Below are positions 2,947-21,840 of a stretch of 64,000 bases of DNA, piece after piece. This stretch comes from Iphione sp. A-MEVVRFRX5 (lineage: Eukaryota). The translations under genes and the position numbers were made by a program. The first letter of the stretch is position 1. Each line of letters starts with the position of its first letter. Location: contig OZ320315.1 in the NCBI GenBank assembly GCA_976226885.1, positions 64,170,001 through 64,234,000 on the forward strand, read 5' to 3'. The notes beneath the pieces were generated by a model. That model was not told where the DNA came from and did no database searches. It saw nothing but the letters and a program-made list of their open reading frames with translations.

Positions 2947-3117
2947 TTAATCACCCAATTCACTGCAATAGGTGACATGGCAGTTCAAGTAAACAGGGTC
3001 CCATCTCAAGCAGCAGCCCTCTTTTACAGGGATCTGGGTGCAGCACTCCTCGTTCATACACTTTGCGTCATCGAGCGTTATGCTGTTACACACCACTGAG
3101 GCAATCGCATCATCCAC
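2947..3117 (-). CDS. Last coding exon of a secreted Cys-rich peptide gene (VDDAIASVVCNSITLDDAKCMNEECCTQIPVKEGCCLRWDPVYLNCHVTYCSELGD*)
   Basis: Pyrimidine-rich acceptor ttcttttttccgtctag|GTG (AG at 3119-3118), phase 0; 56 codons with 8 Cys, then TAA at 2949-2947. GC-richer than its flanks. Possible ATTAAA poly-A signal at 2491-2486. Confidence 0.8.
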   Translation of the reverse strand: MDDAIASVVCNSITLDDAKCMNEECCTQIPVKEGCCLRWDPVYLNCHVTYCSELGD

Positions 3118-3214
3118 CTAGACGGAAAAAAAGAACCAGGGAGGTATTTTTCTCAACCAATAAAGCCTATATTGGCTAGCCTTACAGACGATAATAGACA
3201 GTAAGAATGAGTAG

Positions 3215-3722
3215 TGTAGCGTTTCGGTGTTTGGTACGAACAAAATGCGCATTGAGAGTGTTTCCTCTGAAAGGGTTGTCGGAGGATAATCCTCCGAGAT
3301 AGCCACCGGTGGCGTGGGGTGGGAAGAACATTCTAGAAACTCCCCCTGTGAAGGGAGTACGTGTGTACTGAGCACAGCTCAGAAGGTTCTAGAAAGGATC
3401 TCTCTGGAAGGATCCAAGGTAGTATAGGCTATGGAAGGTTCCAGAAGGGAACTCTCCAGAAGGATCCTATAGAGAAAGGTAGTATGTGCTGTAGAAGGTT
3501 CTAGAAGCACCCCTCCAGAAGGATCTCTGGGGGAGGGTGTTACTATTTTTAAGGATGTACCATGGCTAAATTTAGAGCCAGACTCTGTATATAAGGGCAC
3601 TGATTTCCTGAATAAAGACAGTTCTCATCCGGACTTGGAAGTGAGAGCAACAACGCATATTCTGTGTGGAAGTTCTTTATTTCGCGGTGGCCATCCGGCC
3701 TGACGACGACCGACACGTTACA
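3215..3722 (+). repeat. 5' LTR (508 bp)
   Basis: tgtagcgttt...cacgttaca; by eye identical to 10078-10585; TATATAAG at 3588-3595 and AATAAA at 3611-3616. Confidence 0.95.
3325..3507 (+). promoter_or_regulatory. Array of four perfect heat-shock elements (nGAAnnTTCnnGAAn) in the LTR U3 region
   Basis: aGAAcaTTCtaGAAa 3325-3339; aGAAggTTCtaGAAa 3381-3395; gGAAggTTCcaGAAg 3433-3447; aGAAggTTCtaGAAg 3493-3507. Copies in the 3' LTR at 10188, 10244, 10296 and 10356. Confidence 0.85.
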
Positions 3723-3724
3723 TT

Positions 3725-19000: not shown

Positions 19001-19795
19001 ATCTTTTGTAATTCTGGACAACTTCATACTATTACGGGATGAATTATCAGGGTGTTTGGTTTGAGAGTCATTAGGAGGTGGCCTCTGGCCACAAAATGTG
19101 CGTACCTAGCTAACGTCATGTATACATGTATATTATTAGCAGGCCTCATCTCTTTGAACTAGTAGACATAGCAGGAATGTTGAAGGTGACATTCAATTCC
19201 TTTCTCCCATGTCCTAGTCACCGTTTACTCTCAAGATTATGACATACAGTCAAGACCCTATTTGTGACCACCACTTGGTACAAATCTTAAATGGTTGCAA
19301 TAGTGAATTTGGCCACAAATTGATAAGCGTTGATTATAGAAATCAATACCTTTGGCCTCAGATAAAATGGTCTTAGATTTAACTCGGTTGCAAATTGGAT
19401 TGGTTGCAAATCGAGTTATTCGCAGTTTACAGGCAGTTTGCTTAGTCGCTTGGGTTGCTCCCATACGTTTGATTGATCATATTGCAGGTAATCCATTGTA
19501 CAATGTATATTAAACGGATGAATATACAATTATTTTTTATTTAGTGCATGTCAAAGCGTCTAACCTTTCACTCTGTATGACATTATGGAAATGTTTGCGT
19601 TACCACCAGGGAAAATAGACCATGCCAAGCCTCTCGTCGCTAGATCAACTGAAGGTCCTAAAAAGTTGTATTAATTAACCGAATTCTCTACATATTTATC
19701 ACTTAAAAAGCATATGATTTGCCATAATCTGTCTCCTCGTGCTCATATAGGCTTGTTACTTCTGGACGTTTAAGATCATGTGTGAACTATCTTAC

Positions 19796-19840
19796 CTGCA
19801 ACAGGCAGATGACCAGAAGAAGACCAACAATTTTATACAT
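19796..19840 (-). CDS. First coding exon (signal peptide MYKIVGLLLVICLLQ) of the Cys-rich peptide gene
   Basis: gtcaccATG start context, hydrophobic core, donor CAG|gtaaga, phase 0. The exon begins at 19858 after acceptor ...cttgtggtcag. An upstream 5'UTR exon ends at 20007 with donor gaa|gtgagt (148-nt intron). Confidence 0.8.
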
Positions 19841-21840
19841 GGTGACGACTTCTCCTCGCTGACCACAAGTATAGAATGGATAGGGAGTTTGAGCGTCGCA
19901 TAAATCATGGAATTGATCAACGGCTGGGATTTTCATATCTTTTTATTAAATACCATATGGTCCTAACGAAAAAGTGATGTATCATTGTCAGCCATATGGC
20001 ACTCACTTCAGGCCACTCCCTCTTATAGAATTCATCGCCAAGCAACAGAAAGCTGAAAACATCACCTGTCTCCTAGCTCATCTAACAAAACTCTCTCTTG
20101 AAAAAGGTGGAACTGAAGTTAAATTTCTACTTTGTCCGTTGCCAATGTGTTAAGTAGGGAATATGGAATTCCATTTTGAGACGGATCGAAAAAAATGAAT
20201 AATTCAGTATGGGAATCACCCTAACATTCTGTTGTTCCATGTAAGCAATATCCAGATGACATTCAAGCACTGGAATATGAGTGTGGGTTTAGAGTCATTG
20301 AAAAATATACCGTTCGATGGTATTGAGAAATAATCACGACCGCAAAAAAAGACAGACAGTGCTGTGTTGTGCGTGCCTTTGTTTGCTGACCAATACGTTG
20401 GCAGACTATAGATAAACAAAACACGCAGGGCCAGGCTCAGCTGACAACATGTACATAAGTTCGACTAACCGCCGGTGTCAAGTGTAGCCGGCTAGTGTCA
20501 CATGGCGCCTATAGTTGAAGCAGGAGGTGGGTGGGTGGATGCGGCAGAGGATAATTTTGTGAACGACTTTTTCTGTTTCTCTCCCTTTCGGATTCTTGTT
20601 GTAAAGGGATAAGCATGGGGAACCACCCTTTTTAAGGGAGGTAGCGTACTGAATAGGATTAGCCTCTAAATTCAAAAACCTTTAGAGGCCAAATTCCTTT
20701 CGTGTACTGAGTAGTCGACTGATGGAATGAGTGCTACATCCTTCTTCCTTCTATTAAAAATAAGCACCACCATAATAATTAACACTGATATATACATATA
20801 TTAAAATTCCATCGGCGATATAGTTTTCCCGAACCCATCACTATATATCCAAACGTTCGTCAGGATTCAGTAATTGTTTGATATATGGGAGGAGGCATTG
20901 GATGGGGTGGCTTAAAATCGAAAAAAGAAGAAAACACTATCCTAGGGCAACTCTGAGAGGATATTGGGATAACACAGACAGATAATCCCGAAAAGAAATC
21001 AGTAAAAGATGAATATGTGTGTGTTATTTGCAATAAGAGAAGTATGAAAACACAAGAGGGTAAAATGGAGAAGAATGTAGACTGGAAGAGGACGAGAAGG
21101 AAGTTAACTGAAAGAGGATTAGGAAGAACAAAGGAACAGCAGAATCGCAGGGAGAATGAAGTGGTAGGAGATCAGAAGCAAAGGGCGAGACAATAAAAGG
21201 AACTGGACTACGTGAGACTATGGGGAGACAAGAAAGTAAAAACGGCTGTTGTGCTAGTGAATGGAGAATATTGTCGGTAAAGGGTCTTGTCAGAGAAGGC
21301 AGAGTTACAGGTCGGGTCTAGACACTGAATGAGGAGCCGGCGTTAGGGCGAGGCTGAGATGAAAGGGAAATGTGGAGGGTGTTGGAGGATAGGGTATTTA
21401 GGAGGGATGAGCTCGAGTGGGCGGCATGTTACTTATTGAATCAGTCCGAGTTACTCACTGATAACGAGTCAAACGAACTTCCTGTCATCTCGTCTCGCCT
21501 ACGCGTACACTTAGATTACCCAGCACCCCCGTTAGAGGGGCCACGAAGTGAGGGCATTAGGTAGTACATCCGACTATTAGAATGAGAAACCACATCACAT
21601 AGGTGACACCTTCTTGCAAGACTAGCGTACCAGTGATGCCAAATTTCCGCTCGCTGGGAAGTGAGGTCAAAGGTCGTTAAGCGATGACATTTGAGAGGAT
21701 CATGAAATTCCTTATGCCATAGTTGCGCACATCCTTTTCGAGAAGAGTACCCTCAGGCCAGTTTTTCATTTGTATCTTGATGATCATATTATATCAGTCT
21801 CACTTTCTTTCAGTCAATGAGATGGGCTTCTGGGCTTAGC

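Follow-up and report, generated by a model that had tools for sequence, protein, structure and literature searches.

A probable unannotated gene for a secreted acidic eight-cysteine peptide in a 64-kb stretch of Iphione sp. DNA, and its distance from the conotoxins

Does contig OZ320315.1 of Iphione sp. A-MEVVRFRX5 (GenBank assembly GCA_976226885.1) carry, on the minus strand between positions 64,170,001 and 64,234,000, a split gene for a small secreted cysteine-rich peptide, and if so, does that peptide belong with the conotoxins? The whole stretch analysed, referred to here as the window, is 64,000 nucleotides (nt) long, has no N and is 41% G+C; all positions below are counted from its first base. 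A preliminary description had joined four peptide pieces from this window into a precursor with a toxin-like layout. The locus is probably a real, lineage-restricted and unannotated minus-strand gene for a secreted acidic peptide with four disulfides, known so far from signals in the sequence. Three coding exons (e1, e2, and e4) are well supported and a micro-exon (e3) is optional, giving a predicted precursor of about 85-96 residues.

The four peptide pieces were located by translation. All lie on the minus strand, with GT-AG borders and phase 0 at every junction, exactly as the preliminary description had them; its title spoke of five exons, but four were given and four were found. The parts of the gene are as follows (a slash marks an exon border, and lower case marks sequence outside the exon).

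19840-19796, minus strand: coding exon e1, 15 residues, carrying the n- and h-region of a signal peptide; start in strong Kozak context (caccATG), donor CAG/gtaaga.
11779..19795, minus strand: intron 1, 8,017 nt, phase 0, holding reverse-transcriptase debris at 13965-14522.
11778-11737, minus strand: coding exon e2, 14 codons, acidic, with a proline-rich start; acceptor tctctttttag, first codon GTG, donor CTG/gtaaat.
11613..11736, minus strand: intron 2, 124 nt, phase 0, existing only if e3 is used.
11612-11580, minus strand: candidate micro-exon e3, 11 codons; acceptor acatttcag, first codon TTG, donor GAT/gtaaga.
3118..11579, minus strand: intron 3, 8,462 nt, phase 0.
3117-2950, minus strand: coding exon e4, 56 codons, preceded by ttttttccgtctag, border tag/GTG, open to TAA; it consists of an acidic 9-residue lead-in, the 8-Cys core, and a 5-residue tail.
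2949-2947, minus strand: stop codon TAA.

The Cys-rich exon cannot stand by itself. The TAG of the e4 acceptor is an in-frame stop, so that extension upstream is impossible, and no start codon occurs in e4 before residue 21; closed on that side and without a usable start of its own, e4 requires upstream exons. The window contains a single first exon of the signal type, e1. Since all junctions are in phase 0, skipping of e3 keeps the frame, which makes e3 optional. The gene was said to have escaped the list of open reading frames (ORFs), and this is borne out: it is split, and e4 encodes just 56 amino acids. As to the proviso that further exons might lie between 19795 and 11779, none of the 381 phase-0 candidates in intron 1 made a credible extra exon (acceptor score of at least 3 and donor score of at least 5).

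Taken together, e1, e2, and e4 are well beyond chance; e3 is not. Each GT and each AG on the strand was scored with a generic metazoan donor/acceptor matrix, which is self-made and crude. On this scale the e1 donor stands at the 99.8th percentile, the e2 acceptor and donor at the 99.7th and 96.9th, and the e4 acceptor at the 99.8th, while e3 reaches 70.6 for its acceptor and 96.1 for its donor. Between e1 and e4 there are 1,141 open phase-0 segments that run from an AG to a GT, and e2 alone attains the splice scores of e2. Among 1,248 open ATG-to-GT segments on both strands, e1 alone has an early K or R together with a donor scoring 6 bits or more and a hydrophobic stretch of 10 residues whose Kyte-Doolittle mean is 2.8 or higher. 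By Cys density e4 ranks third of 745 open frames, outranked by two of which one is a hexamer repeat and the other hydrophobic junk, and it is the only compositionally varied Cys-rich terminal frame behind a strong acceptor. Other Cys-rich frames were considered and rejected: the one at 37831-38007 is a (GAGGCA)n repeat, and the one at 53830-54036, like others, is hydrophobic or of low complexity. The (GAGGCA)n microsatellite proper occupies 37921-38007, where it creates the most Cys-rich open frame of the window, a spurious one.

The predicted product has the features of a secretory precursor. The N-terminal exon had been described as encoding a signal peptide, and its n- and h-regions are convincing by hydropathy and by the early lysine: K is at position 3, the hydrophobic core spans 11 residues, and the best 10-residue Kyte-Doolittle mean is 3.47. 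A basic n-region followed by a hydrophobic core of at least 8-10 residues and a polar c-region is the generic mark of secretory precursors, with the cleavage position here ambiguous; the signal-peptidase site is probably at the e1/e2 junction. The succession of signal exon, acidic linker, and C-terminal 8-Cys exon is thus supported as a layout. Separation of signal, pro, and mature parts on different exons is common among secreted-peptide genes and is not diagnostic of any one family.

An acidic propeptide with a basic REK processing site had also been proposed, and only the acidic linker survives. The net charge of e2 is -3 and that of e3 is +1. R-E-K is the sole basic cluster, and the linker's only R and its two K all lie in the doubtful e3. 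Prohormone convertases follow the rule (R/K)-Xn-(R/K), where n is 0, 2, 4, or 6; in R-E-K the arginine is at P3 and the lysine at P1, so this is not a canonical convertase site. Propeptide cleavage is therefore an assumption, because REK misfits the rule and sits in the least certain exon.

The Cys residues of e4 are at positions 10, 20, 25, 26, 35, 36, 46, and 51, with gaps of 9, 4, 0, 8, 0, 9, and 4, and the pattern C-x9-C-x4-CC-x8-CC-x9-C-x4-C was read correctly. The two copies of C-x9-C-x4-C that it contains are copies in spacing but not in sequence, since they have no residue in common besides Cys. Internal duplication of this unit was considered and rejected: at 11/39, nucleotide identity outside the Cys codons is just what the null predicts (P = 0.49). 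If Cys were placed at random, the spacings would match in about 0.6% of cases, a figure that is suggestive but post hoc. With 10 acidic and 3 basic residues, e4 has a net charge of -7, which makes a cationic antimicrobial role unlikely; the suggested defence function, taken in that sense, is correspondingly unlikely.

The hydrophobic N-terminus would direct the nascent chain into the endoplasmic reticulum, where signal peptidase would cut between residues 12 and 17 and the eight Cys would form four disulfides round a small beta-rich core. The acidic product would then be secreted and would act extracellularly by binding, be it as a signalling, a pheromone-like, or a toxin-like ligand, rather than as a membrane-active cationic antimicrobial; pheromone, signalling, and toxin roles are indistinguishable at the level of sequence. 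Because a canonical convertase site is lacking, we regard removal of the acidic N-terminal stretch of about 34 residues as unproven.

How far can the exon structure be trusted? The gene may be real and yet built differently, a possibility that we regard as unlikely without dismissing it. In one form of this alternative e3 is skipped, constitutively or alternatively, leaving an 85-residue precursor whose linker has no basic residue; in another, which may be combined with the first, translation starts at an ATG at 19936, which would place the hydrophobic segment 35 residues in, as an uncleaved signal anchor or a late signal. The alternative gains from the weak e3 acceptor, at the 71st percentile, with about a dozen chance equals, and from the phase-0 junctions, which make skipping of e3 frame-neutral. 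Retention of e3 is favoured by its position just 124 nt past e2, by a donor at the 96th percentile, and by a composition as hydrophilic as the rest of the linker. The following sequences bear on the two ends of the transcript.

20027-20022, minus strand: TATAAG motif, a possible TATA box, which would place the start of transcription about 30 nt downstream, near 19997.
19936-19934, minus strand: upstream ATG, in frame with e1 with no intervening stop; G at -3 and A at +4.
2491-2486, minus strand: ATTAAA, the sole hexamer resembling a poly(A) signal in the 2.9 kb after the stop codon, 455 nt downstream of it.

If transcribed and used, the ATG at 19936 would put 32 extra residues before the hydrophobic segment. 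Its G at -3, its A at +4, and the open frame into e1 speak for it; the context of the main ATG (caccATG) is better, and five more upstream ATGs make the stretch 19900-20000 an unlikely part of the mature leader. On the minus strand within 19900-20081, nine upstream ATGs precede the main start, and six of these lie past TATAAG. Good splice sites also occur in this region, namely donors at 20066 and 20007 and an acceptor at 19962. Position 20007 is the last base ahead of a good donor, GAA/GTGAGT, at the 98.7th percentile. An exon ending there was considered as the missing fifth exon and rejected: the one good acceptor to which it could be joined, with 19962 as first exon base, is so near that the intron would measure 44 nt, and four upstream ATGs would be kept. 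No consistent donor-acceptor pair that removes the upstream ATGs by way of a fifth exon or an intron in the 5' untranslated region was found.

Does the peptide have relatives? Searches were made exon by exon, e4 being the only exon long enough, and structures were predicted for e4 and for its 46-residue core. Paralogues were sought in the window by tblastn with each exon and by blastn with each exon and 150 nt on either side; these gave self-matches only, plus a copy of the long terminal repeat (LTR) that touches the flank of e4. Pfam searches with e4 (E <= 0.1 and E <= 10) returned a chance match to GOLD_PATL1_C alone, at 14 bits against a cut-off of 34.5, and the sequences in PDB gave three matches at chance level (E 0.28-0.74), to a type 2 plant non-specific lipid transfer protein (nsLTP2) and to tick 8.9-kDa proteins. 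A word search with e4 produced zero candidates, an exhaustive HMMER scan of 1.84 billion representatives had zero matches at E <= 0.001 and did not return even the peptide itself, and in a scan of metagenome contigs none of the 131 pattern matches was confirmed. A 56-residue query needs about 45 bits in a library of 1.84 billion, so only fairly close relatives are detectable.

The source lineage is poorly represented in protein libraries: a 552-amino-acid ORF from the LTR retrotransposon in intron 3, surely a multi-copy sequence, finds among 5.8 billion protein clusters one relative only, from ENA and 48% identical. AlphaFold without an alignment gave e4 a predicted local distance difference test score (pLDDT) of 68, with the lead-in modelled as helical, alongside a short helix and a beta-hairpin; the 46-residue core reached 76, with three strands and a short helix. 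A Foldseek search of PDB with the e4 model had no match better than E = 1.9, and one with the core model none better than E = 2.7; no knottin, conotoxin, granulin, or lipid transfer protein was among the matches. The statement that the peptide has no assignable family is supported by the Pfam, PDB sequence, word, HMMER, and metagenome searches.

It is improbable that there is no gene here at all, that is, that an ATG followed by a hydrophobic segment, good splice-like motifs, and a Cys-rich frame are aligned by chance in non-coding DNA. The combination was compared with 250 simulated windows (order-2 Markov). At loose thresholds, single elements arise by chance at 0.12-0.14 per window, or 0.18 and 0.52 if all phases are allowed, which leaves room for coincidence. 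An ordered same-strand pair of a signal exon and a Cys-rich phase-0 terminal exon occurred in 1 of the 250 windows at loose thresholds and in 0 of the 250 at strict ones (the observed values), before the unique e2 is counted. The composition of e4, varied and protein-like, is also unlike that of the other Cys-rich frames. Chance gains some ground from the way the locus was noticed, by scanning the whole window for anything striking, and from the lack of relatives, of a clean promoter, and of a clean poly(A) signal.

Several points weigh against a gene of the structure preferred here. The thresholds of the simulation were picked after the gene had been seen, so that its figures are indicative only, and the e3 splice scores are matched by about a dozen chance segments (among the 1,141 candidates, in the same 16.7 kb). 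At its 5' end the gene is untidy: six ATGs, of which one is in frame, separate TATAAG from the main start; at the other end AATAAA is absent from the 2.9 kb past the stop, where ATTAAA at +455 is alone. By eye, the signal-peptidase site is non-canonical, with Pro after the best small residue. No search returned a homologue, hence there is no support from conservation or from the ratio of nonsynonymous to synonymous substitution (dN/dS), and the structure models, made from a single sequence, are of moderate confidence and have no Foldseek match. All the signals for the gene lie in its sequence. We nevertheless retain a real gene with e1, e2, e4, and an optional e3 as the probable explanation.

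If the gene is real, is it still intact? Intron 3 contains a mobile element.

3213..10585, plus strand: LTR retrotransposon, 7,373 nt, in intron 3 and antisense to the gene, ending 95 nt from the e4 acceptor.

Its two LTRs (3213-3722 and 10076-10585) are 510 nt each and 100% identical; an automated repeat finder reported them as 300 nt, but exact identity extends to 510 nt. A primer-binding site starting TGGTGGCAGCGG and a polypurine tract are present, and there is no clear target-site duplication. The element encodes a gag-like frame of 568 codons (3616-5319) with a zinc knuckle (zf-CCHC) and a frame of 510 codons (8206-9735) to which no function is assigned. No recognisable pol (protease, reverse transcriptase, or integrase) was found in the element, which is probably non-autonomous because pol is not detectable. 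Its plus strand is purine-rich, with a GC skew of +0.2 and an AT skew of +0.18. Since the LTRs are 100% identical over 510 nt, the insertion is very recent. Before it, intron 3 was about 1,089 nt long, so that the insertion amounts to an about eightfold lengthening.

The insertion could affect splicing, though all recognisable signals are intact. A recently inactivated or decaying gene, in which an element 95 nt from the e4 acceptor disturbs transcription or the splicing of the last intron so that this allele yields no peptide, is quite improbable. The perfect identity of the LTRs fits such an account, as the insertion is very recent and may be polymorphic, and so does the increase in intron length. 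The element is antisense, however, and spares the acceptor with its polypyrimidine tract and the preceding 95 nt of intron, and the frame is intact; multi-kb introns with transposon debris are normal in this window, intron 1 being an example. In our preferred reading, neither the coding sequence nor the acceptor nor the likely branch-point region is damaged by the recent antisense insertion into the last intron.

The remaining question is whether the peptide is a conotoxin. The order C-C-CC-CC-C-C defines framework XI of the I superfamilies (PMC4278219), and in the searchable literature this string was found for conoidean venom peptides only. In GXIA the Cys are at 1, 8, 14, 15, 19, 20, 24, and 31, giving loops of 6-5-0-3-0-3-6, and the peptide has an ICK+1 fold (inhibitor cystine knot plus one) with a triple-stranded sheet (PMC7912261); the loops of Tx11.3 are 6-5-0-3-0-4-6 (PMC3862624). 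In the I1, I2, M, O2, O3, P, S, and T superfamilies, conotoxin genes are built of three exons, approximately one each for the signal, pro, and mature regions, with introns of more than 3 kb; intron 1 is in phase 1 except in I2, and intron 2 is in phase 2 except in I2 and T (PMC3862624).

The present peptide shares with framework-XI conotoxins (I1/I3, for example iota-RXIA, GXIA, and Tx11.3) its eight Cys in the order C-C-CC-CC-C-C, and the gene shares with theirs the placing of signal, linker, and Cys-rich parts on separate exons with multi-kb introns. It differs in loop sizes (9-4-0-8-0-9-4 as against 6-5-0-3-0-3/4-6), in the length of the Cys core (42 residues as against about 31), in having four coding exons (three if e3 is skipped), all in phase 0, where I1 has three exons with phases 1 and 2, and in a peptide of net charge -7 without a basic cleavage site before the core. 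Compared by eye over 15 residues, e1 and the signal of Tx11.3 (PMC3862624) share generic hydrophobicity alone. No conotoxin was found among the PDB sequence matches (E <= 10), in the word search, or in the HMMER scan of 1.84 billion representatives. When the core model (pLDDT 76) is compared with ICK+1, it has three strands and a helical turn; its best Foldseek match, at E = 2.7, and the others include no knottin.

It is very unlikely that the peptide is a conotoxin, or another conoidean venom peptide, of framework XI and the I-superfamily type that folds as ICK+1 and acts on an ion channel, and membership of the family is close to refuted: the shared Cys order (PMC4278219), the large introns with signal, linker, and Cys-rich parts on separate exons (PMC3862624), and a modelled three-stranded sheet and helical turn of the sort described for GXIA (PMC7912261) are outweighed by different loop sizes, four coding exons instead of three, phase 0 in place of the phases 1 and 2 of I1 (PMC3862624), the lack of any conotoxin sequence match or knottin fold match, and a strongly acidic peptide with no basic cleavage site before its Cys core. 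What stands of the idea of a conotoxin-style precursor is the Cys order and the general layout; loops, exon number, intron phases, charge, and pro-site do not agree, and neither sequence nor fold gave a match. The peptide may function as a secreted ligand rich in disulfides, yet its membership of that family is not demonstrable. A toxin or conotoxin label is not supported as a statement of family membership.

Other families fare no better. The weak resemblance to con-ikot-ikot that had been suggested is not upheld: that scaffold is helical and disulfide-rich while the models here are mainly beta, and no such chain is among the PDB sequence or Foldseek matches. The best PDB sequence match, at chance level, is a plant nsLTP2 (1n89_A, E = 0.28), which shares eight Cys and a central CC; nsLTPs have C-C-CC-CXC-C-C and are all-helical, as against CC...CC and beta-rich models here, and e4 has no match to the Pfam LTP families. 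A CC-x8-CC spacing with beta-hairpin character, which we take to be a granulin trait, resembles e4 and is a lead only. Granulins have 12 Cys and four CC pairs where e4 has eight and two, and no granulin appeared among the Pfam matches at E <= 10 or among the PDB sequence or fold matches.

The closest likeness is to the generic small secreted Cys-rich precursors of invertebrates (orphan venom, pheromone, neuropeptide-like, and immune peptides), which are about 100 residues long, with a cleavable signal peptide and an even number of Cys, mostly in the last exon, and which are fast-evolving, lineage-restricted, and often unannotated, as here. Unlike them, the peptide is acidic rather than cationic and lacks a dibasic processing site, and no particular family can be named. 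Tentatively, it may represent a new family of acidic secreted four-disulfide peptides with a spacing of their own (twin C-x9-C-x4-C units flanking CC-x8-CC) and a fold absent from PDB, acting as extracellular ligands (pheromone, toxin, or other) in an under-sampled invertebrate lineage; we hold this to be possible and somewhat doubtful.

Apart from the peptide gene, the 64 kb of the window contain no recognised host gene; scans for rRNA, tRNA, and Rfam families gave no match. Fragments of reverse transcriptases of the non-LTR type, from long interspersed nuclear elements (LINEs), lie at 1144-1731 (plus strand), 13965-14522 (minus strand), and 26339-26713 (plus strand); RVT_1 is matched at 26339-26713 (E = 7e-14) and weakly at 13965-14522. 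The start of the ORF at 1144-1731 faintly matches e1, but this candidate was rejected, being by eye the C-terminal part of a LINE reverse transcriptase, with no Pfam match. A fragment of a pogo/Tigger-type DDE_1 transposase is at 44730-45137 (plus strand; E = 2e-11), and tandem arrays are at 32800-33142, 33183-33380, and 42216-42530, with units of 60 nt (also 119 and 179), 50 nt, and 71 nt.

The ratio of observed to expected CpG is 0.59 for the whole window, with 8-kb blocks lying between 0.39 and 0.78. The overall value is far above those of vertebrates. The depletion is moderate and patchy, as mosaic DNA methylation in an invertebrate could produce. Together, the CpG ratio, the LTR, LINE, and pogo debris, and the multi-kb introns indicate a non-vertebrate eukaryotic genome.

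Orphan genes for Cys-rich peptides are common in invertebrate genomes. The present locus has no bearing on a long-standing open question, and on present evidence the toxin label should stay out of its annotation. If expressed, it would be another short, split, and fast-evolving secreted-peptide gene overlooked by gene finders and ORF lists, and its practical value would be to repair the annotation and to seed a search for paralogues in this genome. Greater weight would attach to it only if its fold were new or if it proved to have an expanded family around it, specific to a tissue such as the venom gland, the reproductive tract, or the mantle.

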